64,000 nucleotides of DNA from Trichosphaerium sp. ATCC 40318 (lineage: Eukaryota > Protista > Tubulinea). Below, in pieces: positions 1-14,437 of the stretch. Position 1 is the stretch's first letter; every line of letters starts with the position of its first letter. The DNA lies in NCBI GenBank assembly GCA_038496445.1, contig JALMLS010000225.1, positions 74,510 to 138,509 of the forward strand, in the 5' to 3' direction. Made by a program: the position numbers and the translations under genes. The notes beneath the pieces are model-generated. The model saw only the letters and a list, made by a program, of their open reading frames with translations, was not told the DNA's origin and did no database searches.

Positions 1-600
1 GGCTTCAACCACCGAGGCCTCAACTGGTGCACCAACAACTAAAGCGCCAACAACACAGGCGCGTAGTGGTGACAACTGAAGCTCCAACTCCTACCACCAA
101 TCCACCCACAACCGATTATTCAACAACTGATGCCCAACAACTGGTACCAACACTGCGAGCGCTAAAAAACTAAATAGATTTAACCACGTTTAGATTGTGA
201 TGAGCCAAATGGCGATGGTACTTTTACTGCCTCTTCAGGATATTAGCATAACCATAAATTAAAGGCAAGGTTATCCACTACACTTTCTTTATTGTAATGC
301 TTTATTTAGGATAATTTGTTAAATAATAAACTTTCTTGTTTAAGAACACTGTGCATCTGTTTCTTGTCATTGGCGCATATAGCCATGACATTCTTTACAA
401 ACTACTGCCAATGACAACAGATCCTTTAATAACACTAACACCTACAACAATAGCTCAAACGACAACATATCCTCCAACAACACTACCACCAGCTACTTTG
501 TCTTCTACAATGATAAATCCTTAAATAGCGCTACCTTCAAAAGCGCCAGTACCAACAACAACAAACTCACCTAGTGTACACAAACAAAAAACAGTCGGAC
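1..600 (+). other. Thr/Pro-rich low-complexity (mucin-like) coding remnant, partial or degenerate
   Basis: Reads ASTTEASTGAPTTKAP... and TPTTIAQTTTYPPTTLPP in broken frames; no continuous ORF. Confidence 0.3.
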
Positions 601-630
601 ACTAACTCAACTTTATTTAGGTTTTCTGAA

Positions 631-2653
631 TTACAAAAAACGCGCAAAATCTTTTGCCAAAAACTTTGCTCTTCCAGGTCGTGGCTTGTATGTTTTCGTC
701 ATTTCTCTCTTCCACAGGGACTTTAGTGCAATTTTGCGTCTAAGCGACTTCTTTTTGCGGTCATACATTCCTTGTAACTGACGCTTCTTGCATAGGCTCT
801 CCTCTTCATTTTCTGGATCCACTTTATGCGATTCAAATGCTAGACGCTCATCTGCGCTCTTTACTAACACTTCAGCTTTCAGGGATGGATGTTGTGTGAG
901 CAACTGCTTGTAGTATGCGTTCACAACCTTGCGAATTTCATTTTGTTGGTAAGAACTCCATTTGTTAAATTCTTCAATTTTTTTGTTGTTTGTTGTGTTG
1001 CGCACCAAAGTAGGGTTGTTGTTGTAAAACTGTTCAACAGCACGTTCTTTCTCCTTTCTTAGTCTTTGATATTTTTCACAGAAATCAAAACGGTCATGTT
1101 CTACAGACGGAGGAACAGTGCGATCATTGGGCGTTGGTGTTTCTGTAGGCGCAAAAATATCACCAATACAACTGAGCCATGTCTGCTGAACATCCTCGCC
1201 TGTTATGGCGCTAGTGTGATTGTAGACAATTTTAGTGACAAAATTGACATAACTACATAGGTGTGAGCACTTGTGGCAGTGAATACGTGGAGAAAAAGCA
1301 AAGGTAAACCAAAAACAAAAAAAAAAATGGTACTTACGCTAATACAACTGGAGAATCCTTTTTCCAACCACCAAGCTCTGCTAATTGTGTGTAGTCGATG
1401 TTGGAACCCCCTTTACTCAGTACAGTGATTACATACTGAGTTGCCATACCTCTGCAGCTAGAGTGGGCGGTGATTTGGCCTTTCTTGTATCCAGCAGCCT
1501 GACCACGCTTGGACATCATGTTTCCGAGTCCTTGTGCCGTGATTGGCTTGGTAGGAAAGTACAAGTTGTTTGTAGCCGCACACCACAATGGCAACTTCTT
1601 GTGTGTCTCTTTCACCTAGTAGAAGCAGTTCAGTACAGGATGAAAGAAACGTGTAACCCCACAAAAAAAGAAGTAAAAAAAGAAGGTACCTTGAATGTGT
1701 GCGTTTTTGGATCATACATCTCCAAAGCTTCTCTGTCATGTAGGTACAGCGCCAAAGCTGCCAGTGGGTTGATATCAGCAAACTCCTCGCTTTCAGTGCT
1801 ATCCACAAGCCAAGTTTTGTGACACTGCTCAAAGATCTTATCTTTTTCAATGTAGACTGCCAATTTCGCGTTACCAGCCACGTGAATTATTGAGAGATCT
1901 TCCAAGCGTATTTTGTGGTGTGAATCGGCACGTTTACCCAAAAACATGTTTAGGATAAGGTATGCACGATCACGGATATTAATCGGAGTTGTTGGGGGTA
2001 TATGTGCCAATATTTTGCGCAAAACAGGTATAACAATTGGCACCTTTTCTAAGAAATCTTTTTGTGTTTCTGGGTTCTTTTTTTCGCATTGCGCTAGTAC
2101 TACGTTTGCTACACAAAAATTAGACTCAATGTATCAAAGTACAAAAGAAAAATCCAAAACCACGTGATTATGGCGTACTTTCTGCATGAAATGCTTCATC
2201 AAGAGGTGGCTGTCCTTGAAGGCGTGACTCTCGCAGTAAAGATCTCAAGTAAGTTTTTCTACTGTTGTTGCGATAACCCATCTTTGTTAGCGCAACAATC
2301 CATTCCTTCACAAAATCCACCTGAAGAGGGAATATGGAAGTCTCTTCTGGGTGATAAAACCTACAAAAAGTGAGTCAATTCTAAGAACAGTACTTGGTTA
2401 CTCTAGCTAACATATGCTCTAATAATGCGTACTTTAGGAACAACGTGTAATTGGCAGATGCCCGTGCTGCTAAAACAATGCTGCCATTCTCAAAAGGTTT
2501 GCGCTCTAGATCCTGTACTGTGCTGACAATCTCCTCTATAGGAACAGTTTTGGCCATTTCTTGAAAAGCGGCTTCCAAACCTTTGCCACTAAAACGCCGC
2601 TTATATCCTTTCCTTGGTTTAAGACCATCCAGGTCAGTCTTTCTTTTACTCAT
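631..2653 (-). CDS. Tyrosine recombinase, Crypton-like, 5 exons
   Basis: GT-AG introns at 2361-2393, 2109-2178, 1616-1689 and 1253-1337 join one open frame. Motifs RDRAYLILNMFLGKRAD (first catalytic R), ITAHSSCRG (HxxR region), LGGW and VVLA|YV (catalytic Y just after intron 4). Confidence 0.88.
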
Positions 2654-2750
2654 CTGGTTGAAAGCTAACCAAGCGCTATATAACTTCTGTTGACTGTGTT
2701 GACTGCCGTTGAGTCAAGGGCAGTAAGAAAGTGTTGTCCTTTTGGTGTTT

Positions 2751-2907
2751 TCTGTTCTATTCAGTTTAATCTCTGAATGGGGGACGAATGTCCCCCACAA
2801 GATTAAGCGAATTTTTTCCGGGGGCAGGGGATTGTCGGACTGGCTTGCCTTTCCACCCCTGCAATGATCTGTCAGGCCTTACACTACCCGCCAGATGAGG
2901 TCAACCC
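2751..2907 (+). pseudogene. 5'-truncated U2 snRNA copy starting at TCTGTTCT
   Basis: Reverse complement of the intact U2 body at 4383-4539; lacks stem-loop I and the GTAGTA branch-point recognition sequence. Confidence 0.88.
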
Positions 2908-3015
2908 CTTCTCTAAACATCAAAGAAAAACAATAACCACCTTCAGACTGGGAAAGCACTCTCTATCTTAGGGTATAAATTTACCAAAAAATTTTTACAA
3001 GTCAAAAATTTCCGT

Positions 3016-3041
3016 GATACTACACCTGATCTTAGCCAAAA
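3016..3041 (-). repeat. 26-bp U2 5'-region fragment, left copy
   Basis: Minus strand TTTTGGCTAAGATCAGGTGTAGTATC, 25/26 match to U2 at 4538-4563. Confidence 0.88.
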
Positions 3042-3593
3042 CAAAAATCACACTTTTTCTTGTTTTCCGTTTCCAATCGCGTCATTTCAAAGCCACAGCT
3101 TAATGCTGAGAATAGAACCGTCGTACTTAAAACATCAGTTTTATTCGTTTGCTGTCTATGACCTTAAGTGATATCAAAATTTGCAATGTCAGTTTCAGTA
3201 GGCAAATGGCAAGATGATCGCAGTATTTACCCACTTACACGGTACGATCAAACATTATTCTTCCATGAGCTAAAAGCAAATTAAAATGAATCGATGGCCT
3301 GCAAAGCTATCTCATTACTACTGAATGGTGGTATGAATGCCTCAAACACTGTTTGCGTATGTTTGCTTCAAAAAAATTAACTCACGTGTATAACGTACTA
3401 GCGCTACACTTGCGCCTACCCCACGCTAACAGAAGCGCTCTCGCAGCATTCAAACAGAAAAGCAGTGATAATAACATGAAAACCTCCCCAAAACACTATC
3501 AACGCTGCTGTAGGCTTTGCAAACGCAGCCAGGTGTCAATTTATATGTAAATAAAAATGTTTAGTCTCGTTTTGTTAAATCACGTGTTTGAAA

Positions 3594-3721
3594 CGGTTGG
3601 GTTCCCCAGGCAGTCATGAGGGTAGACTGCCCTTAAAAATATGAGATTTGTAAGACCTGTCAGAAGTGTCAAATCCGTCAATCTGTCATTGGTCAGATTG
3701 GGCAGAAACTGGTTTTTTTTT
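3594..3721 (+). ncRNA. Candidate structured small RNA with three hairpins and a T9 tract
   Basis: Stems 3609-3615/3625-3631, 3645-3650/3670-3675 and 3679-3685/3694-3700; T run 3713-3721. Family not recognised. Confidence 0.3.
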
Positions 3722-4215
3722 GTTAAAAGTCAGCCTGGCTTAAAACTTCAAACGACAATAAGTTAAACTGCAAAACTGTAAATGTATAACCTTTGTGTAA
3801 CATGCGTAAGCATGTAGAACTTTAACAAAGCATGTGGTGCCATGGTAAAACGCGATTACGGATTTTGTTGCTGAGTGTCTTAGCCGTCGGTTTATGGCTA
3901 CAGATTTTTGTGGATTTAAATATAGCTTCCATATCAGCGTTTTCATGGAACAGTTGCTCTCACGCATTCCATTCTTTAGACCAATAAATGAGCATCATCT
4001 TCTGAAACCTTTCGTAGTTATAATCGTGTACAATAAAACATTCAATTTCGTTGATTGATCTTTACCAACTTGCGTGAGGGTTTTGGGTCTTAGAAGGCCA
4101 GAGTGTTACAAGTACTGGCATAGGAGATGATGTGTACATATCCTAACAGTTAAAAGGGTTCATGGCAATAAATTAGGTGTTTGAAGCGTAGTGATTGTGT
4201 TGTGTGAATACGAAG

Positions 4216-4539
4216 GGAAACGGAAAACAAGAAAAAGTGTGATTTTTGTTTTGGCTAAGATCAGGTGTAGTATCACGGAAATTTTTGACTTGTAAAAATT
4301 TTTTGGTAAATTTATACCCTAAGACAGAGAGTGCTTTCCCAGTCTGAATGTGGTTATTGTTTTTCTTTGATGTTTAGAGAAGGGGTTGACCTCATCTGGC
4401 GGGTAGTGTAAGGCCTGACAGATCATTGCAGGGGTGGAAAGGCAAGCCAGTCCGACAATCCCCTGCCCCCGGAAAAAATTCGCTTAATCTTGTGGGGGAC
4501 ATTCGTCCCCCATTCAGAGATTAAACTGAATAGAACAGA
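4216..4539 (-). repeat. Right arm of 324-bp inverted repeat
   Basis: Reverse complement of 2751-3074. Confidence 0.93.
4249..4274 (+). repeat. 26-bp U2 5'-region fragment, inverted relative to the U2 gene
   Basis: TTTTGGCTAAGATCAGGTGTAGTATC; inverted repeat with 4538-4563; followed by AAATTTTTGA at 4279-4288. Confidence 0.88.
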
Positions 4540-4576
4540 TACTACACTTGATCTTAGCCAAAAGGCCGAGAAGGTT
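4383..4576 (-). ncRNA. U2: U2 spliceosomal snRNA, intact
   Basis: Minus strand ACCTTCTCGGCCTTTTGGCTAAGATCAAGTGTAGTATCTGTTCT (conserved U2 5' end), stems IIa and IIb, U-rich Sm-like site AATTTTTTC, two 3' hairpins, about 194 nt. Confidence 0.96.
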
Positions 4577-5250
4577 ACTTATTGGGTGCCGTTGAACATG
4601 ATTTATCAGCCTAGTAATTAAATTTATTGTGGTTTTTTTTCTTTGCTTACAACGTCGCTATAAAAATGTACCACAGCGATTGTACGCGCTATTATGGGTT
4701 CAAACTGCGTTTATGTTGAGAACAATTGGATAATGACTATCTTTCTTAAAACGCACATTGAATCGCTTGTACGCCTCAAAGTCACGATAAAAGACATAGA
4801 AACAAGTTCGACGAAGTATCTGCTGTACGGCGCTAAAAATTTTCTGGTAGCGATCTTGTATCTCCTAAACGCGCTTTTTCAGTGTTACCAAGGTACTACG
4901 CACTCGAAAAAAAAAAGCATTGAGAATGCTCCAAATTTCAAAGTCAAAAATAGCGAAAATCAGAAGAACCTTTATTTTTATCCAGTAAACAATTCAGCCC
5001 TGCAATAGCCCAAGTGTTATCCAGTGGAGTATGTCGTTGCGGCGATAACGTGTACCAAACGTAAAAAACATTCGTCCGCTGAAGTACAGCTCCAATAAAC
5101 AGTACCTGCACCGCCTTCGTAGCTAATAACCTCGCCTGTATGTTACTCGCGCTCACAGTGATACACTCACGAAAATAAGGTTCGCAATAGCCCTGTTTGC
5201 TTGTTGTGTTGTGGGTGGACTTCAACAACTAATAATCAAGCGAGATGGGT

Positions 5251-5780
5251 TTATTTATTCAACGTTTTCTTTAGTTCTTCTAGCGTACACGCGTTTTGTA
5301 TTAGTGCAGTCTGAAGCAAATCGGCAGTAGTTGATCTTGTATCAAAACATTTTGCAACAAAGTCAATCACCTCCTCAGAACAAGAGTACAACTGCGAAAG
5401 CGCTTTGGTTCGATCAAATACACGCCCAACAGCCATCTCTACAGCTACGAATCCAATTATCACATTTGTAGTTGAAGTTAATACCAATGAAATGCTCTGT
5501 GGTTTGTGCGTCAATTGAACGCGCCCATCTTTATGCACAATAACGTCATCTGATTGAACGTTTTTGTGCAATCTGTATTTGTGTAGATACAAGTTGAGAT
5601 AGTATTGACTTTAGGATAGCAGCCACGGTGGGAAGATTCATATCAGTGCGTGCAAGTAGTTTGAGGGTTGTAGAGCGAAATAGTTTGGTTGACCGCTTTT
5701 TGAAATATAGTCGTATACGCTTTACTTCTTTGAGGGAGAACGTGCTTGAGGATTGAGCGATCATGTGATGTTGTGCGAGT
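5251..5780 (-). pseudogene. Degenerate STE20/PAK-like kinase domain
   Basis: VAAILKSIL / LYLHKYRLHKNVQSDDVIVHKDGRVQLT / DFVAKCF..RSTTADLL echo kinase subdomains VI-XI; HRD and DFG absent; frameshift near 5592. Confidence 0.5.
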
Positions 5781-5996
5781 TGTGTACTTAAAAAAAAAGG
5801 CATGAACGTTGAGTGATCATGATTGAGTTGCAAAAGGTTTCAAACCTATTTGATTGATCACTCGTACTTAGTAATAACGCTTTTGGTGTATTAACTTGAC
5901 AGTTGAGTGCAGTTCAATCATTGTGATTTCGACAAATCCTGCCTACATTTCTCGTGTCAGTCACGTAATTTATTTATCATCATTGAAATTGTCGCC

Positions 5997-8076
5997 ATGT
6001 CTTTCATTGGGGTATTAGCTGTTTTAAGACATTATTTAACGTATTGTAGACTATTGGAGAGGGTTTATCTCGTTCTACAGACGATAGCCCAATAGATATT
6101 GAGGAAAACCTTACAGGTTGGCGAAATAAAGCAAATAACGCAGTGCTGACTATTTAGAATGGCTATTGGCAAGGAGAAAGATACCCAAAACGTGGAGTAA
6201 GCAATTACGTGAGCTACAAAGTAAACAAGTACGCTTTACAACCCAATTAGTTGTTTTGTCGATTTAATCCATCAATAAAAAGCAAAGCGTGGTTACATTT
6301 GAACCATACGCTACAATACGTTGTTGCGATGGCTATCGGATGTTTTTGCTAATTTATGCCAGGACGCACTTATACGCGACCAGATGCCTTCCAATACTTA
6401 CCTGCAAGATTTAGTAAAGCAACAACGTAAGCTAAGGGCGAGATAAGGGGTTAAAAAATGACACATTGTAGACAACATTTTGACATATTTTGATATTTTG
6501 GATATTATTTCGAACATTATTGACAGTGGTGAAGACTCGTCGAAAAACTTACTTGGCTATTACAACTCCAAAATTCTTTGTGTACGTTTACAGTACATTC
6601 AGTCACGGTTGACTCCTAGCAAGCAAACCATGTTATTTAAACTCCTTGAACATTTCAAATATGTATTCACTTCTAGTAGAAATGGCAAGGTATCCAAACG
6701 GCATATGAAAGAAACAACTTGCATTTGGCTCACTTGGCCAAGTTGCTACATGATACGATAGATAATAAGTTGTACGGTTTTTTTAATAATCACTTGATCT
6801 TACTCTTCTAGACCTTCGTTGCTAGAAGAAAAGAATAAATTAAAAAGACAATTAGCTTATATACATAAGAGAAAAACATCAGCACTGGATACAAAACGTC
6901 GCATTGAGGATATTCTAAAGTCAAGATTTACAGAATACGGGATTGTTGTATGTAACACATTTTATTTGTGCTAAAGCTTGTTAGGGTGCGAATGTTCGGC
7001 AAGAGTTATTGGGTAAAGTATTAAAAGAGCTTCCCGACTTATGTGATGAGATTATGCAGCAATTACAACAAAGCCACATTGGCGAAGCCGTAGATCATTA
7101 CTCACGATTTGTTGATCACATGGCGTTGAAACATGTAACTGCCCTTGGCACAAAATCTAACGGTGTAAATGTTAGCGGTATGTTATACGCATAAACAGAG
7201 GCTCACTAGGAGTAGAGATCATGAGTACTTTATGCAAAGTAAGAAAAGAAGGAAATTTTATAACTAGCAAAACTAATTTCTCGGATTCAAACTTCGGTAT
7301 AGAGATAGTTGGTGGGGGAGAAGTTAACACAAAACCATCTAGCGATGGCATTGATTGGGGTGAGTAGTCATATGTTTTTGCAGTTAACGTGTACAAGGCG
7401 ATTTTGACATTACTGGTGACACCATTGTTGTATCATCGAGTAGAGTGATTCACACCTACACTTCCGAGGAAATTAAACAGTTAAAAAATAGCGCTTTATG
7501 TAACAGAAAAACGAGAGGAGAAATATTAGCTAATTTAAACGAACTGCTTGGATTTTTGAAACAACGTGCTGCAGATAAATCAGTCGAAGAGAATCTGTCC
7601 ATTCAACAGCTTCAAAATGCGCCCTGGGAGGTTCACAAGCACGATGCAATGAGTAACATACAACGATTAATTAAAGAATTAAACCACACTGTGAACAAGA
7701 TAAACAGCACTGAGGCACAACTTTTATTCAATTTAGCAACTTCGGAAAGGTACGCATCTAGATCGCCATACACTTATTCTGTAGTATCTTAGATAGAATA
7801 TGTAGTGATGTAGAAATACATCGCACTCGCATACGCCGTTTAGAAAAACTACATGATGAGGAGAGTTTAGTAGCCAGTAAGGTTTCCAAAATGATAGAAA
7901 TCACACTACAGGAACTACAAGACCACTGGCGAGCGCGTGTGAGCGTTTTAAAGACAAAAACAGGTGTGAATTCGAACAAACTGTAAACTGATACAGTTGT
8001 AGAACGTATGTTGGCTGTACAACATAGTAGAAACGTGACAGTGCACAATATAGCAGAAAAACTGCTAACCAAGTGA
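5997..8076 (+). CDS. CDK5RAP3: CDK5 regulatory subunit-associated protein 3 (C53) homolog, multi-exon
   Basis: Spliced PIDI..EWLLARRKIPKTW..LTYFDILDII..SSKNLLGYYNSK..KWQGIQTAYERNNLHLA and GIDWG match the C53 family pattern. Confidence 0.85.
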
Positions 8077-8677
8077 GTTTGGTTCAAATTCTGTACTTAC
8101 TTTTTGTGGTTAACTTAAATACATAACGGATAAAATTAAACCGGAAATGTCTGAAGACGAAAGTTCGTTTGTGCAATTGGCACAGCTTCAATACTACCAA
8201 ATTTTACACTGGGCGTTTGGCCCAAATCAGTCCCTCCTTCATGTAGCCCTTTTCTTGTTAATCCTTTTTCTGGCTGTGAGGAATGCCATGCATGGTGCTG
8301 CTACCCTAAAAGGTAAATGTGTAACACCTAATCCTCGAAGTGCTAGTGTACGCTTTTTAAACTTGTACTAGTACCTCACAACATTTAGGACGACATAAGC
8401 TTTCTTTTTAGCGCGTCCAAAGATTTCATAGACTGGACTTTATTAAGGCTCGGCTATGCCCAATCGCGTTGTAAAGCTCCACAAAGGCCAAAAACTGACT
8501 TTAGCGGCTTGGTATGCAAAAACTGCGAAAACAGCAAAAACATACTTACACAATGTTAGTTCAACTGTGGTTCCGCCACTCAGGACTTGTCACACCTACA
8601 AAGTGAAAATAATCAATTAACGGTAAGTTACTGTTACAAAAATCAAAACTAAATGTCAAACAGAGCGATTTGTACAC

Positions 8678-9026
8678 ATGCCAAGCGGACAAGAAAGATT
8701 TAAAACAAAAAGCAAATCAAATTCAAGCTCCTGGCGAACACGAGGCTAAAAATGCAAATAAGATGATTCCTCTATGGTTTCATCATTTTCATGTGAGTGT
8801 GACGATTACGTTTTAAGCTTACAATCGTAGACCTTCGAAGCCAAAATTCGCCTGATGAGGGAAAAAATTGCAGCAGAAGTCAGGCTTCAAGCGTACGACC
8901 TGTGAACTACTAATTACTAACATTTTAACTAGTGAAGTACTCTTCGCGTTTAGAAAAGGGCTATTCTATGGCATTGCTGGAACCGCAGGCAGCTTATGGT
9001 TTGCATCCTTTTCAAAGGCACCATAA
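8678..9026 (+). CDS. Small hypothetical protein with C-terminal hydrophobic segment, 3 exons
   Basis: Two GT-AG introns give an open ~89-aa frame ending GLFYGIAGTAGSLWFASFSKAP. Confidence 0.4.
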
Positions 9027-9141
9027 GTGAACTATACGTTAAAAAATGTAAATCAGAATAAAATGAGTGATTCCTGGCCGTTCGTTAAAGTTTTAAAACG
9101 ACTGGAATCGACCAGTATTATTGTTGAAAAGCCACAACACG

Positions 9142-10779
9142 ATGACCATGCGAGCTACAACCATATTGATCCTTACAGTTCTTATCGAACTTATAACGTG
9201 TAAAACATGCGTTATAACGCGTTATGGCGCCAAAGGAGATAGTACGTTAATGATTGTTAACATTACTTGATTACCAGCTTCCAGACTCGACAAATAATGC
9301 CGAGGCGATACAAGCGGGTTAGGGAACTAATTCAGTATTGTACTTACATAAAACGTCAGCGATACGTAATTGTACTTCATCAAGCACCCGGTACAGCTCG
9401 TCCTTACTTTTACTAACTAAAGTTTTTCACATGCTAACATTCAAAAGAAATGTTGTGCTTGTGCCAGAAGAAGGCACATTCCAAACTGGGCCGCTAAGGC
9501 TGCAGACCGGCGTAGAATTGCGTGTTCTTGGTTCGCTAGCGGCTGTACCAAATAGAGCGTAAGTTATAACTGCGGTTGTGAAGTAAACACTAAACCTTTT
9601 TTCTAGGTTGTTTAATGGTAGTAAGAGCGTTATTTATGGAGGTGGAATAAAAAATATCGCTATAATAGGAAGTGGTGTTATTGACGGAAATGGTGTGTAG
9701 AACCTCGGTTGGTTTTAAATCGTTAAATCACCTAGGTGCTCTATGGTGGCCATACGCATACAAAGAGCCACGTCCTCATTTACTATTCTTTGAAGATTGT
9801 AATGTTTTAGAAATGCGCGATGTCACATTACGAAACTCTCCAATGTTTCATTTCTTGACTGCAGGTGGATCTAATGTAACTGTAACAAACGTTAAAATAC
9901 GAGCTCCATTTGATTCTCCTAACACAGATGGCATAGACATCGGTGAGATAAAGGATACTAATGACTCTTGGCTAACACTACACTTAGGATCTTCGTATAC
10001 CTACGTTTCTGATTGTGATGTGCGAAATGGAGATGATTCTATTTGTATGAAAGAAGGAGCCAATCATGTGCTTGTAGAAAATTGTTATTTGGAAGGTTTG
10101 CCTCCAGGGTATTAAACCACTATTTGAATCCTGACTATATGAAGGACTTGGACCTAACATAGGTACTGGGAGCCTTACAAGCGAGAACATAACATTCAGG
10201 AATATTGTCACTAAAACAGGTGAAATGACGTTTGGGTTTTTTTATTGTAACACAAGTTCTTACTTTGGTTTCAGCTTGGGGTATACGTATAAAATTCAAG
10301 CCTGGACAAAGTGGATATCTTCGTGATGTATTGTACAAGAATATCACAATCATTAGTTCATCAAAGGGTCTTGATATCAATCTTTATGGTCAGTCATTTG
10401 ACAAGAATAATGTTCCTTTTGATGACTACGCTCACATGGAAATAAGCAATCTTCGCTTTGAAGATGTTACAGGTACTGTTTCTTTAATTATTTTGCTCAC
10501 TTAAGAATGTAGGTAATGCCTCCAGTGAGGCAGGAACATTTTCATGCTCAGCGGATTATCCTTGCAAAAGCACGTGCAATTTTTTTAACATCAAAAGTTC
10601 ATTTCGCATTTTCCAAACAGCACTTCTTATTGTTGTTTTAACTTCGTACCAACGCGACATATGATATAGATATCACTATGAAGAATGTTCACATCAATAG
10701 TAAAGTACCGTTCACTTGTAAGGACATTTATGGAACAGCTGATGATGTATCTCCAAAATCTTGTTTCAAACCCAACTGA
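9142..10779 (+). CDS. Glycoside hydrolase family 28 (polygalacturonase-like), secreted, multi-exon
   Basis: Signal peptide; YGAKGD, G.IDGNG..WW, SPNTDGID, GDDSI and GIRIK motifs. Confidence 0.88.
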
Positions 10780-10920
10780 AATCGTCACAATAAATGATGG
10801 TCTGCCAGTAACGATTATCATTCTTGCATCCAAGGTTGTAGAAAATTTTATTTGTTTACAGTTTTTGCTGAAATCAAAGCAAAATACGAAGTTCTTCTTT
10901 GAGAAATTTTTACCGTTTTT

Positions 10921-13900
10921 TTAATGTGCAGGGACTGCGCTATTTACTTTTCGTGGTTTTCTGCGAGGAGTGAATAATAGCATTTCTAGGTTCATAAAAG
11001 GCTTCTCTACAAGCAAAAATGCTGCTGCTGCGCCAATGTATGATACAAATACAGAGCATGTGACAAGAACCATAAGGCTCAAATCAGAGTAAGCGACAAT
11101 GTCGCGACGGCTGGAGTTAACAATAATCAACCTAAGGAAAATTAATTACATCCGCATCAACAATTAATTGTGAACTCAGGATCTTTTCTTTGTCTTTTTT
11201 TTGTAAGTTTGAAAATGTTGCATTTTAGTTAAACGTTTGATATTGTACCAGATTGGGTGGAATAGGTAAGCGGCTAGAGTTAATCTACTCAATGGTAGCC
11301 AAATATCTAGTGCCAAAATGTGGTTGGCGAATCCGCCGTGTCCTGTTGAGGAAGGTAAGTACAAATAGTAAAGTATAAACAAAAGGAGTCTTCTATGCTA
11401 GCGTACCAAACAAGAAAGTAACAGTAATAATACCGATGCCAATAGCCCATAATGGGCGATCAAAAGCGTTCCATAGACACCTGAACCATGAAGGCCACAA
11501 AGCTAAGGAAGGAAAAAACATTAGAAAATATTCGAATCGAAGAAAAACAAGAAACAAAAAATCACTACGTACTGTTTGCGCTTGTGTAAAGAGGTTGATT
11601 TGCAAAAAGCAATGTAATAAGAATGAAAGCAGCAATAAACCAACCAACAAGTACAAGCCAGTATCTAAAGAACAACAAAAAAGATAAGAATCCAAAAAAG
11701 TACACGAAAAAAATGAAGTTTGTTTTGCAAAAAAAAACCTGAGCTTACGGAAGATTTTTCTTGGCTTTTACTCGCTTGTGATACCAAATAGCAAAGAAAA
11801 TACCAATCTACAAGATGAGTGAGTACTCTGTACGGTGTTTAGGCCTCGTTAACGTACGATGTAAACACAGACTCTGTACCAAGGTTGGATGTAGTAAATC
11901 CATCCAATAATATCGTTCGTGCTGTGTTTAACTACAATATTTGTTGTAATCAACTCAGCAACATTCAATCCATAGTAACCAGACATAATACCTCTAAAGG
12001 AAATTTTTTAGTTAGTAAAGAAGCACGTGGGTTCTTTGTTTTCTAAGCAATGTTTACCTTGCTAAGATTGATCCGCTAAGGCCTAGGTAGAGTATGCTGC
12101 TACCGACAATAGGCCATTTGTAAAAGATGTATACGACAGGTAACAAGAAAGCGAAAAATTGGAAGTCGTTTGCGAGATACCAAGTCCAACTCATACATGC
12201 ACCAATTTCTGTCTTTTTGAGGAAAAAAAAGTTAGACAATAGTACAGGAGACACCGTGTCTTTTTTTTTGTTTCGTACCTGACTCCATGGCGCAAGGTTG
12301 TTAACGTATAATAGATTAGTGTACCAATACTTGTGGCAAGAATCAAGTCTTGGAAAAGTGTTTGAAAACTTGGCCCTATTTTTAGAAAAAAGCGTTAGTT
12401 CACACTCTATTTAGTGTAATGATGTAAATTTACATACCACAATGGTCCATTACCAAGATATGGTGTCATGAACATGAACATGAATAAGAAAAATACGTAG
12501 ATAGGTGTCAAACGAAGGTAACTACAAGCGGATAAATAATTGTCCGCTTTACGGGTTTTTTAATGTACCGATGGATATATGCCATAACCCAACGGAAAGG
12601 TGACATCTTAGATCCGCTCTCAAGCTTTTTGAGGAACATAAGTGCCATGAGGAAACCTATTTCTCATCAGATTTTTCGCCTATTACCAAAAAAATAGGAA
12701 AAACTTACCACTGAGGAAAAAAAAGGTGTCTACACTGTATGGTGCGTTCCATATGAGTTGGAACGACCACCTAGGTTTAGCTACCTTGTAAACATAGTCG
12801 AAATTCGTAAATCCACCGCCTAGTTGTTCCCAGACTAAGAGAAAAAAATTAGTCAAAAAAACTTTAAAAAGAAAAGTAGAAAAAACAAATCAGCGTACTG
12901 ATTGCTGAGTGACCGGTAATAACCCAGAACATACTGATGACTCTAAAACCAAAACTGTTAGTTGGATTTTGATGGATACAACTGATATTTGTTTTTGTGA
13001 ACTCCACGTGCCTCAAACCGTTTAGAATTGGCATATTTCCTTTTGGTTTCGACATAAGTCTCTCAAAATTATGCATTACAGAGAACGCCATTAGTAGTTT
13101 TACCAAAAATGTTTGTGGCTTTTCTGGTCTCTTTGCGTTGTCTTTTTCGCCATACTTATTGATAAGATCTTCTTGACTGCTGTGAAAGTTATCGTTGTGA
13201 ACTTTGTCAGAATAGATGTCTAAAAACAGTCAGTTAAAAAAAATCACAAAAGATCATTGGCCTTTTCACCAATTTCACCGTTTAAACACAAAACGTACTT
13301 ATTATTGCGCTGGCCATTGCCTTTTCATATCTTTCTTGTGCTACCTACAAAGAATTAGAAAAACAATCACACGTGAAGATTTTATGAAAACCAAAAAAAT
13401 GTTTCATTTCTTTTGTTTTTCAATTTACCCGTATTCTCCAGCGAAGAATATAATCATAGGCAGTGCTTAGAATGACTAATAAAGCGAGGAGAGAAATAAT
13501 TGTAACGTAGATAATTGCAGCTACAAGTGACGGTAAGTGGAAATAGATAAAAAATACCACGTGAGAATAACAAAAAAATAAGAACAAATCCAAATACGTA
13601 CGAGCATTAAATTTATATTTTTGTTCTCTGCAAAAGGTCCCTTGAGATTTAAGATCAGAGCCCAACAATGAACCAAGTTCTACAATAAACCTTAGGGAAT
13701 ATCCTACCATTGGCATACTGCTCTACACAACGGAGCAAACGACAAAAACGAAAAAAAAGAAAAAAAAAAGAAAAAAAAACTGACCTTCAATAGTAGGAGC
13801 GTATCTACGAAGAAGAGGGTTTGTGCTCCTGTTCAGCTCTTTACCAACCTCTATAAGCTCAGCAGGCGCTGCAAGGATGACAGTTTCGATATCTGCAGCA

Positions 13901-14437
13901 CTACATGCTGAAGGCGCGCATATACCCAGATTTATGCTATTGAAAAGTTATTAACCGAATACAATGCAGAAATGGCTCAAAAAGGCAAGAAAGCAAGGGA
14001 AGGAACGTACGTTACGCCGAGTTGTTCGTAGGTAAATGTTGTCAAACAGTGGTGCGTGTTGGTCAAAAGGTTGCATTCGTCCCAGTTGCCTACATCATTA
14101 ATTCCTTTACCGCTGTAGCGTATTAGGGTGAATTTTTGCACTTCAGTTAGAGCTTCCTACAAAAAAAATAATTAGGAAGTTACAGTATTGTAATAAAGTA
14201 ACGTCATTATGCTGGGGTTGCGTAGTAATACTTCATGCAGGCACTTTCCACAAAAAATACAAGACGTTAAATTTCCGAAGAATTGTCACGTACCCATTCG
14301 CGCAAGCATTCATTACTAGGAGGTTTAGAAGGAGCAGTGGAAGGTGCACTAGGAGGGGCATCGGCACGCTCTCTTATTGGACGTTTCGCACCAACGGTAA
14401 TAATCAACAAAAGCAGTACGAATAGACCAAACCGCAT
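10921..14437 (-). CDS. NRF-6-like / acyltransferase-3 membrane protein, multi-exon
   Basis: Signal peptide; LNGLRVISMFWVITGH, SVDTFFFLSG, CMSWTWYLANDFQF, PLSRLTLAAYLFHP, LLVEKPFMNLE. Confidence 0.88.

Follow-up and report, generated by a model that had tools for sequence, protein, structure and literature searches.

Background

How does a gene for a tyrosine recombinase come to stand against incomplete copies of the gene encoding U2 small nuclear RNA (snRNA)? The question is raised by one end of a 64,000-nucleotide (nt) stretch of contig C169 from the amoeba-like protist Trichosphaerium sp. ATCC 40318 (C169:74510-138509), referred to here as the window. A preliminary description of this region had proposed a Crypton-like element that recombines with U2 genes. 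We surveyed the genome (70 Mb, 642 contigs) and found that the recombinase gene lies within an insertion of 7.8–8.5 kb, which interrupts U2 genes at a fixed position, is flanked by 36-nt direct repeats of U2 sequence, and has exact empty sites elsewhere in the assembly. The proposal therefore stands as far as a fixed-position element with three copies and exact empty sites is concerned; the action of the recombinase is the part that we infer. From these comparisons, we read the insertion as a low-copy, Crypton-like DNA element targeted to U2, with recombinase-catalyzed integration as its likeliest mechanism, and hold this reading with somewhat better than even confidence.

The insertion and its empty sites

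U2 genes in this genome are arranged as convergent pairs, or cassettes, of ~2.5 kb that hold either two full genes or one full gene and one mini-U2. Seven canonical U2 genes were identified, two each on C13 and C169 and one each on C9, C117, and C155. The mini-U2 units, one standing opposite the full U2 of C9 and one on the minus strand of C155, consist of a U2 promoter, U2 nt 1–59, and then inverted nt 17–28, where nt 1 is the T at window position 4577. A genome-wide search returned three full copies of the insertion, one on C169 that extends into the window and two in opposite orientation on C395 (copies A and B), with no further full copy in the assembly. All three abut U2 sequence on both sides, and the U2 5' half that had been expected upstream of the window is present, since a U2 promoter and U2 5' end lie directly left of the block of homology on both C169 and C395. 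The element's left end, suspected to fall before position 1, was located near C169:69470, ~5.0 kb upstream of the window.

The junctions were compared in U2 sense. The left junction reads promoter, U2 nt 1–48, and then element sequence, while the right junction reads element sequence, U2 nt 13–48, and then the remainder of the target. C395 has a C9-type cassette in which both genes carry an insertion of ~8.5 kb. There, the right junction of copy A continues into a full U2 and that of copy B into what remains of a mini-U2, and the direct repeats span U2 nt 13–48 (36 nt); on C169 they effectively span U2 nt 13–186. Removing the insert and one 36-nt repeat from C395 junctions A and B yields exactly the full U2 and the mini-U2 of C9. 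The C169 site relates in the same way to the left U2 gene of C13 as its empty site, and both C13 U2 genes are intact. The C169 and C13 cassettes are homologous for 124 nt beyond the left gene and 202 nt beyond the right one; their homology ends sharply at these distances, which indicates that the cassette itself was duplicated between loci.

The left junctions come in two related forms. On C169, the element carries a near full-length U2 variant (C169:69422-69613) with its own 3' flank, which scores 122.7 bits against 150.9 bits for the intact gene and differs by a 1-nt deletion and the loss of the GGGGGACGAATGTCCCCC hairpin. The C395 copies have a miniature U2-like sequence in its place, and the 9-mer CGAAATCAC marks both variants as related.

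At the right junction, the window's copy of the repeat is damaged. Copy B has an unbroken U2 nt 13–60 (CCTTTTGG...) after the same upstream sequence, and the window copy and copy A equal this minus 11 nt and minus 2 nt; our reading of 2738-2760 draws on this intact version (C395 16625-16590) and on the empty sites of C9 and C13. The preliminary description had placed the recombinase start codon ~100 bp from a U2 copy starting at 2751. The codon (2653, minus strand) and the 98 nt from it to the start of perfect U2 identity at 2751 (TCTGTTCT) were confirmed, but 2751 is not the start of U2, given that a decayed nt 13–48 occupies 2738-2760. Nor did the assumption survive that 2738-2750 is anything other than a decayed U2 5' end, as comparison with copy B found it decayed, an outcome that the preliminary description had itself named as grounds for refutation. 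The clean cut at nt 39/40 is lost as a result, and the insertion is not. Left of nt 13, the sequence is specific to the element.

C395 itself is a near-perfect palindrome of 26.7 kb, with arms at 4474-14195 and 26351-16618 that are 99.65% identical over 9.7 kb; each arm carries one element copy, and the 2.4 kb center is asymmetric. A short palindromic contig of this kind, whose upstream 120 nt are identical to C9, could have been produced by misassembly or by a difference between haplotypes, without any real repeated insertion. We consider this scarcely credible. The asymmetric center matches that of the C9 cassette, the two right junctions differ (full U2 against mini-U2), and the arms differ at 34 positions and fall to 94.8% identity distally, while the remaining copy sits on a 138 kb contig, C169, with different flanks.

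Table 1 Features of the window around the insertion
Feature	Position	Strand	Basis and remarks
Right-hand 2.7 kb of the element	1-2737	.	98.5-99.4% match of window 130-2745 to C395 11583-14195 and, in reverse orientation, to C395 19230-16618
End of the threonine/proline (Thr/Pro)-rich repeat region (APTTEAPTT-type), ~5 kb overall	1-560	+	Open reading frame (ORF) translations
Tyrosine recombinase gene, 573 aa, five exons (very probable)	631-2653	-	Spliced ORF open in all three copies
Element-specific right arm	2654-2737	.	No differences among the three copies; contains a short palindrome and the direct repeat GTTGACTG (two occurrences)
Weaker U2	2730-2910	+	Rfam, 84 bits
Right-junction (attR) copy of the 36-nt direct repeat	2738-2760	+	11-nt and 2-nt deletions; T for A at nt 38
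U2 3' part, target-derived, nt 49 to end, promoterless	2761-2910	+	Rfam; same sequence as canonical U2 genes
Inverted U2 nt 15-40, left U2 unit	3016-3041	-	25/26 identical, ends ...GTAGTATC
Inverted U2 nt 15-40, right U2 unit	4249-4274	+	25/26 identical, ends ...GTAGTATC
Intact canonical U2 gene	4380-4577	-	Rfam, 150.9 bits; aligned to the U2 genes at five further loci
Unoccupied copy of the 36-nt site (U2 nt 13-48)	4530-4565		Within the intact U2 gene
U2 promoter, and the right-hand margin of the cassette of convergent U2 genes	4578-4779	-	C13 cassette homology stops at 4779; promoter conserved from about -55

The recombinase gene and the content of the element

The positions of the gene and its neighbors are listed in Table 1. 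Its exons (2653-2433, 2360-2179, 2108-1690, 1615-1338, and 1252-631) are separated by GT-AG introns of 70–85 nt, and the start of the gene is 85 nt away from the right end of the element. The motifs occur in the order expected for a tyrosine recombinase [Arg, (Lys), His-x-x-Arg, His/Trp, Tyr]: GKR is in exon 3, exon 4 has HSS(R/C)R and then GGW, and LAY falls where exons 4 and 5 join, the Tyr following the Trp at a spacing of 10 residues. This series can be likened to the HSAR...GGW...Y region of Cre. Protein language-model neighbors of exon 4 were Phage_integrase for 57 of 100 matches, at 0.95, and DUF3504 at 0.90; those of exon 3, at 0.92–0.97, were NDC10_II, DUF3504, DUF3435, Phage_integrase, and ResT-TelK. 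The best NCBIfam match of exon 4, queried as a single exon, was the archaeal XerA over the HxxR region, a weak hit (E 0.13), and a single-sequence AlphaFold2 model of exon 3, built without homologues, reached a mean predicted local distance difference test (pLDDT) score of 36.8, too low for the model to be of use. Motifs and neighbors together suggest that the product is very probably a divergent Crypton-type tyrosine recombinase. We also considered a telomere resolvase acting on the C395 palindrome and rejected it, given that only 2 of 100 neighbors were ResT-TelK and the palindrome center is asymmetric.

Eight of the ten exon differences among the three copies are synonymous and two are nonsynonymous, and differences are sparser in exons (10/1722) than in introns (8/301; Fisher p=0.0025), a pattern indicating that the gene is under purifying selection. 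One difference falls in the catalytic motif: at window position 1388 (codon 328), the window copy has Cys (HSSC) where both C395 copies have the arginine of HxxR (HSSR). Because this arginine is replaced, catalysis by the window copy is probably impaired, in which case it would rely on the C395 copies. The Arg-to-Cys variant and the intact C395 copies offer a ready-made control for a functional test.

C169 and C395 are homologous well beyond the gene. The shared block extends from C169:69609 (C395:5802), across a Thr/Pro repeat and the recombinase gene, as far as window position 3078, and within it C169 69609-74015 matches C395 5802-10801 at ~95%. Pfam gave only a weak Extensin_1 match to the Thr/Pro region (E 1.7e-4), which is cargo or a minisatellite inside the element. 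Outside the recombinase gene, the element consists of this repeat and ~600 nt without a family match, with no other non-repetitive ORF. No ORF for a reverse transcriptase, RNase H, methyltransferase, or endonuclease was found in it, and a comparison of its first and last 400 nt for terminal inverted repeats (TIRs) or long terminal repeats (LTRs) gave nothing above chance. We class the element as Crypton-like because neither a reverse transcriptase nor terminal repeats were found. The right arm between the gene and the U2 sequence presumably serves as promoter and attP arm. As a decayed U2 promoter or the tail of a U2 unit, it aligned no better than shuffled sequences (p=0.48 and p=0.11), and these candidates were dropped.

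Two old, short, intron-bearing fragments of the recombinase gene, ~90% identical to it, were found outside the three copies. One (C572:11771-11983) includes intron 1 and lies 1.9 kb downstream of a large-subunit ribosomal RNA gene, and the other (C26:386421-386500) lies 56 nt from a transfer RNA (tRNA) gene. Because both retain intron sequence, they suggest that the gene moved earlier as DNA.

The probable exchange interval and a proposed model of integration

The preliminary description had the 3' and 5' U2 pieces meeting at the TC dinucleotide of nt 39–40. There is no clean cut at this place: the duplicated segment is nt 13–48, and the exchange can be placed only within nt 39–48. Nucleotide 38 is T in all three right junctions and A in all left junctions and empty sites, and on C395 the sequence specific to the element sets in at nt 49, so if the T is element-derived, the exchange would fall within nt 39–48 (TCTGTTCTAT). 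The element's left end carries inverted U2 nt 19–31 (12/13 match), forming a 13-nt dyad centered on nt 43/44, which is the middle of this interval; 4 of 2000 shuffles reached it. The dyad of the mini-U2 units has the same center, nt 44. As a feature of a recombination site, the dyad is suggestive.

Under the integration model, the free element, presumably a circle, would carry a U2-like attachment (att) site composed of U2 nt 13–48 and then, on the left-end side, the inverted part-copy that makes the 13-nt dyad. This site and a U2 gene in the chromosome would recombine conservatively, strands being exchanged within nt 39–48, and the element would thereby be inserted. The left junction would retain the U2 promoter and nt 1–48 and run into the element-borne U2-like sequence, near full-length on C169 and miniature on C395, and the right junction would be a promoterless U2 3' part. 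Recombinase catalysis, the circular intermediate, and the position of exchange are all deduced from the junctions. The segment involved, U2 nt 13–48, takes in the sequences that pair with U6 and recognize the branch point, and hardly varies among eukaryotes. A stronger version of the model is that of an active eukaryotic integrase with a 36-nt U2 attachment site, which follows the bacterial logic of integrase and attP and rebuilds a U2-like gene at one junction; we advance this tentatively, at a little under even confidence.

Several observations weigh against recombinase-driven integration. The copies number only three, in one genome, and two of them form the near-perfect palindrome and may not be independent. 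Among the copies, substitutions group A with B, while a 13-nt deletion groups A with the window copy. Searches of Pfam, NCBIfam, and PDB with single exons gave no significant recombinase match, and no relative turned up in other organisms, as phmmer with exon 3 against 1.84 billion protein representatives found one unrelated weak match and a word-index protein search with exon 4 found zero candidates. Classical recombinase core sites measure 6–8 bp, and the arms of the dyad are 24 nt apart, which is much wider. No circle (attP) junction is present in the assembly, and homologous recombination through the common U2 sequence could yield the same junctions.

One acquisition or several

To what extent the three copies record separate insertions was evaluated from their flanks. 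The C169 flanks match those of C13 at 85% upstream (120 nt) and 95% downstream (170 nt), and the C395 flanks match those of C9 at 100% upstream (120 nt) and 95% downstream (170 nt), while C169 and C395 agree with each other at only 61% upstream and 83% downstream. The elements are ~99.3% identical over the 2.6 kb recombinase part, with introns differing by 2.7%. Because the elements are ~99% alike and the flanks 61–83%, the insertions would be much younger than the host cassettes, which points to at least two separate acquisitions at the same U2 position. In total, the element occupies one full U2 of the C13 type and, in the C9 type, one full U2 and one mini-U2. The conflict between the substitution and deletion groupings indicates that gene conversion has acted on the copies, and copy B may derive from A by recombination, since the palindrome of 9.7 kb at 99.65% extends past the element into the flank.

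The same two signs of exchange between copies would fit a single entry into a U2 gene by any means, followed by ectopic gene conversion or break-induced replication via identical U2 sequence, with the recombinase uninvolved in the spread. U2 is identical among cassettes over 48 nt on the left and over 142 nt plus downstream sequence on the right, and the arms of U2 pairs are homogenized to 99–100%. This account leaves unexplained the 36-nt direct repeat of the first insertion, the constrained recombinase gene 85 nt away, and the dyad centered on the exchange interval. It would also have to work from a left homology of only 48 nt beside a promoter that is 61% identical, and copying across 8 kb of heterology is expected to be rare. 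We regard spread by conversion alone as unlikely and retain recombinase-catalyzed integration as the favored reading.

The inverted U2 pieces

The window also contains two inverted 26-nt U2 pieces, which had been described as att-like half-sites. Their coordinates and their common end hold (Table 1), and they correspond to U2 nt 15–40. They belong to a larger inverted repeat with arms at 2751-3079 and 4211-4539 (329 nt, 99% complementary, 1131 nt in between), which connects the weaker U2 copy (2730-2910) with the intact gene (4380-4577). Each arm consists of the U2 3' part, ~105 nt of downstream sequence, the inverted nt 15–40, and a tail of ~40 nt. The half-site interpretation did not hold up, given that the same piece occurs 105–117 nt downstream of 7/7 canonical U2 genes, with or without the element, five of them at element-free loci. 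It shows a constant A-to-G difference from U2 and is invariant amid surroundings that are 77–95% identical. Because it follows all seven genes with this constant difference, it would predate the present insertions; as read from these alignments, it is a standing part of the U2 gene unit and not an att site left by insertion.

Could the exchange nevertheless have occurred at the TC of nt 39–40, with the 26-nt pieces as att half-sites made by the element? The pieces end at nt 40, within the exchange interval, and the left end of the element has a related inverted piece. Their presence behind every canonical gene with the same A-to-G change, including the five at element-free loci, and the origin of the apparent U2 start at 2751 in two small deletions make this version quite improbable. 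Exchange somewhere within nt 39–48, as in the integration model, does not depend on the pieces. An older tie between the 26-nt piece and recombination at the U2 site is possible, as its end (nt 40) falls inside the inferred interval and related inverted pieces occur at the element's left end and in the mini-U2 genes.

Convergent U2 pairs with inverted U2 5' pieces are also possible substrates for inversion, and a host or domesticated recombinase could serve the cassettes through inversion, copy correction, or pair amplification without being the integrase of a mobile element. Purifying selection on the gene would agree with such a role, as would the presence of NDC10_II and DUF3504, which are domesticated Crypton derivatives, among its nearest neighbors. 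The gene, however, lies inside an insertion that is missing from paralogous cassettes, and three near-identical copies that each interrupt a U2 gene would not be expected of a host enzyme. We found no flipped U2 unit of the kind that inversion between nt 15–40 and the downstream inverted copy would produce, as 13/13 exact U2 5' ends in the assembly run on into canonical sequence. A host function is thus very improbable, and we return to the recombinase as that of a mobile element.

On the opposite strand, the 26-nt pieces of the window and C13 have a run of five T within ~6 nt (ACGGAAATTTTTGAC in the window), a motif resembling an Sm site. The pieces of C9, C117, and C155 have AAATTTAG in place of the five-T run.

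Comparison with known elements

Target-specific elements in multicopy RNA genes of eukaryotes include the non-LTR elements R2, Utopia, and Keno, the DDE element Dada, and the Starships that insert in 5S ribosomal DNA (rDNA). A full-text literature search found no Crypton-like or other tyrosine-recombinase element linked to U2 genes. If the stronger version of our model is true, it would provide the first known case of a spliceosomal RNA gene targeted by a tyrosine-recombinase element.

In layout, the nearest counterparts of the element are bacterial integrases with tRNA genes as targets. Integrases of bacteria and phages that use tRNA or transfer-messenger RNA (tmRNA) genes are encoded next to an attP that holds part of the small RNA gene, and integration duplicates that part, leaving a complete or rebuilt gene at one junction and a truncated copy at the other. 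The present case differs in its eukaryotic host, its spliced gene, and a duplicated part that comes from the 5' side (nt 13–48) and not from the 3' end, and it is known from sequence alone.

With Cryptons (Goodwin 2003; Kojima and Jurka 2011, PMC3212892), the element shares a eukaryotic host, a tyrosine recombinase as its sole enzyme, an intron-bearing gene, and the lack of TIRs, LTRs, and reverse transcriptase. Both bear direct repeats at their two ends, the presumed substrate of recombination, and are presumed to pass through a circular intermediate. Cryptons have terminal repeats of 4–6 bp and no described RNA-gene target, and the listed hosts include no Amoebozoa (PMC3212892); unlike them, the present element has a repeat of 36 nt that belongs to the U2 gene and a fixed target. 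At the protein level, no sequence relationship to Cryptons was found, and the language-model neighbors are the only link.

Among eukaryotic elements, the closest are the Starships, of which some, such as Voyager, insert in 5S rDNA (bioRxiv 10.1101/2021.12.13.472469, PMC9156397; PMC10104507). They likewise combine a recombinase at one end, cargo, and a multicopy small RNA gene as target, and the DUF3435 cluster is among the language-model neighbors of our gene. Starships, however, occur in fungi and measure tens to hundreds of kb, with Captain proteins that match DUF3435, whereas the element described here is 8 kb in size, belongs to an amoeba-like protist, and lacks a Pfam match.

Utopia and Keno share its target, the U2 snRNA gene. 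U2 sequence downstream of them starts at nt 39, and Utopia is present in Amoebozoa (PMC4640811). As nt 39 is the edge of the nt 39–48 interval, the same few U2 bases appear to be struck by unrelated elements. Utopia and Keno encode a reverse transcriptase and an endonuclease; both are missing from the present element, whose 36-nt direct repeats and exact empty sites are in keeping with conservative recombination.

Dada resembles it as a DNA element with strict specificity for multicopy small RNA genes. It has a DDE transposase, TIRs, and target-site duplications, and its reported targets include U6, U1, and tRNA genes (PMC3706591).

If the recombinase is active, the bacterial arrangement of a small-RNA-gene attP with repair of the target on entry would also have arisen in a eukaryote, and a third, mechanistically unrelated class of element would have converged on the same few U2 bases. 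An active enzyme would also mean a defined long att site within a sequence that almost every eukaryote shares, a point of practical interest for site-specific integration; if the stronger version of the model is true, the enzyme could be put to use, as a natural recombinase, for inserting DNA at multicopy U2 loci.

Minor observations

Tandem repeats related to the Thr/Pro region (compare window ~400-500) occur at a handful of loci genome-wide. Two of these, C117:109078-109703 and C155:67367-67697, lie 1.3–3 kb from U2 cassettes, and neither tblastn nor sensitive blastn found a trace of recombinase relics beside the C117 and C155 cassettes. At C169:67145-67178, ~7.3 kb before the window, an orphan U2 nt 19–40 without a U2 gene also ends in ...GTAGTATC.

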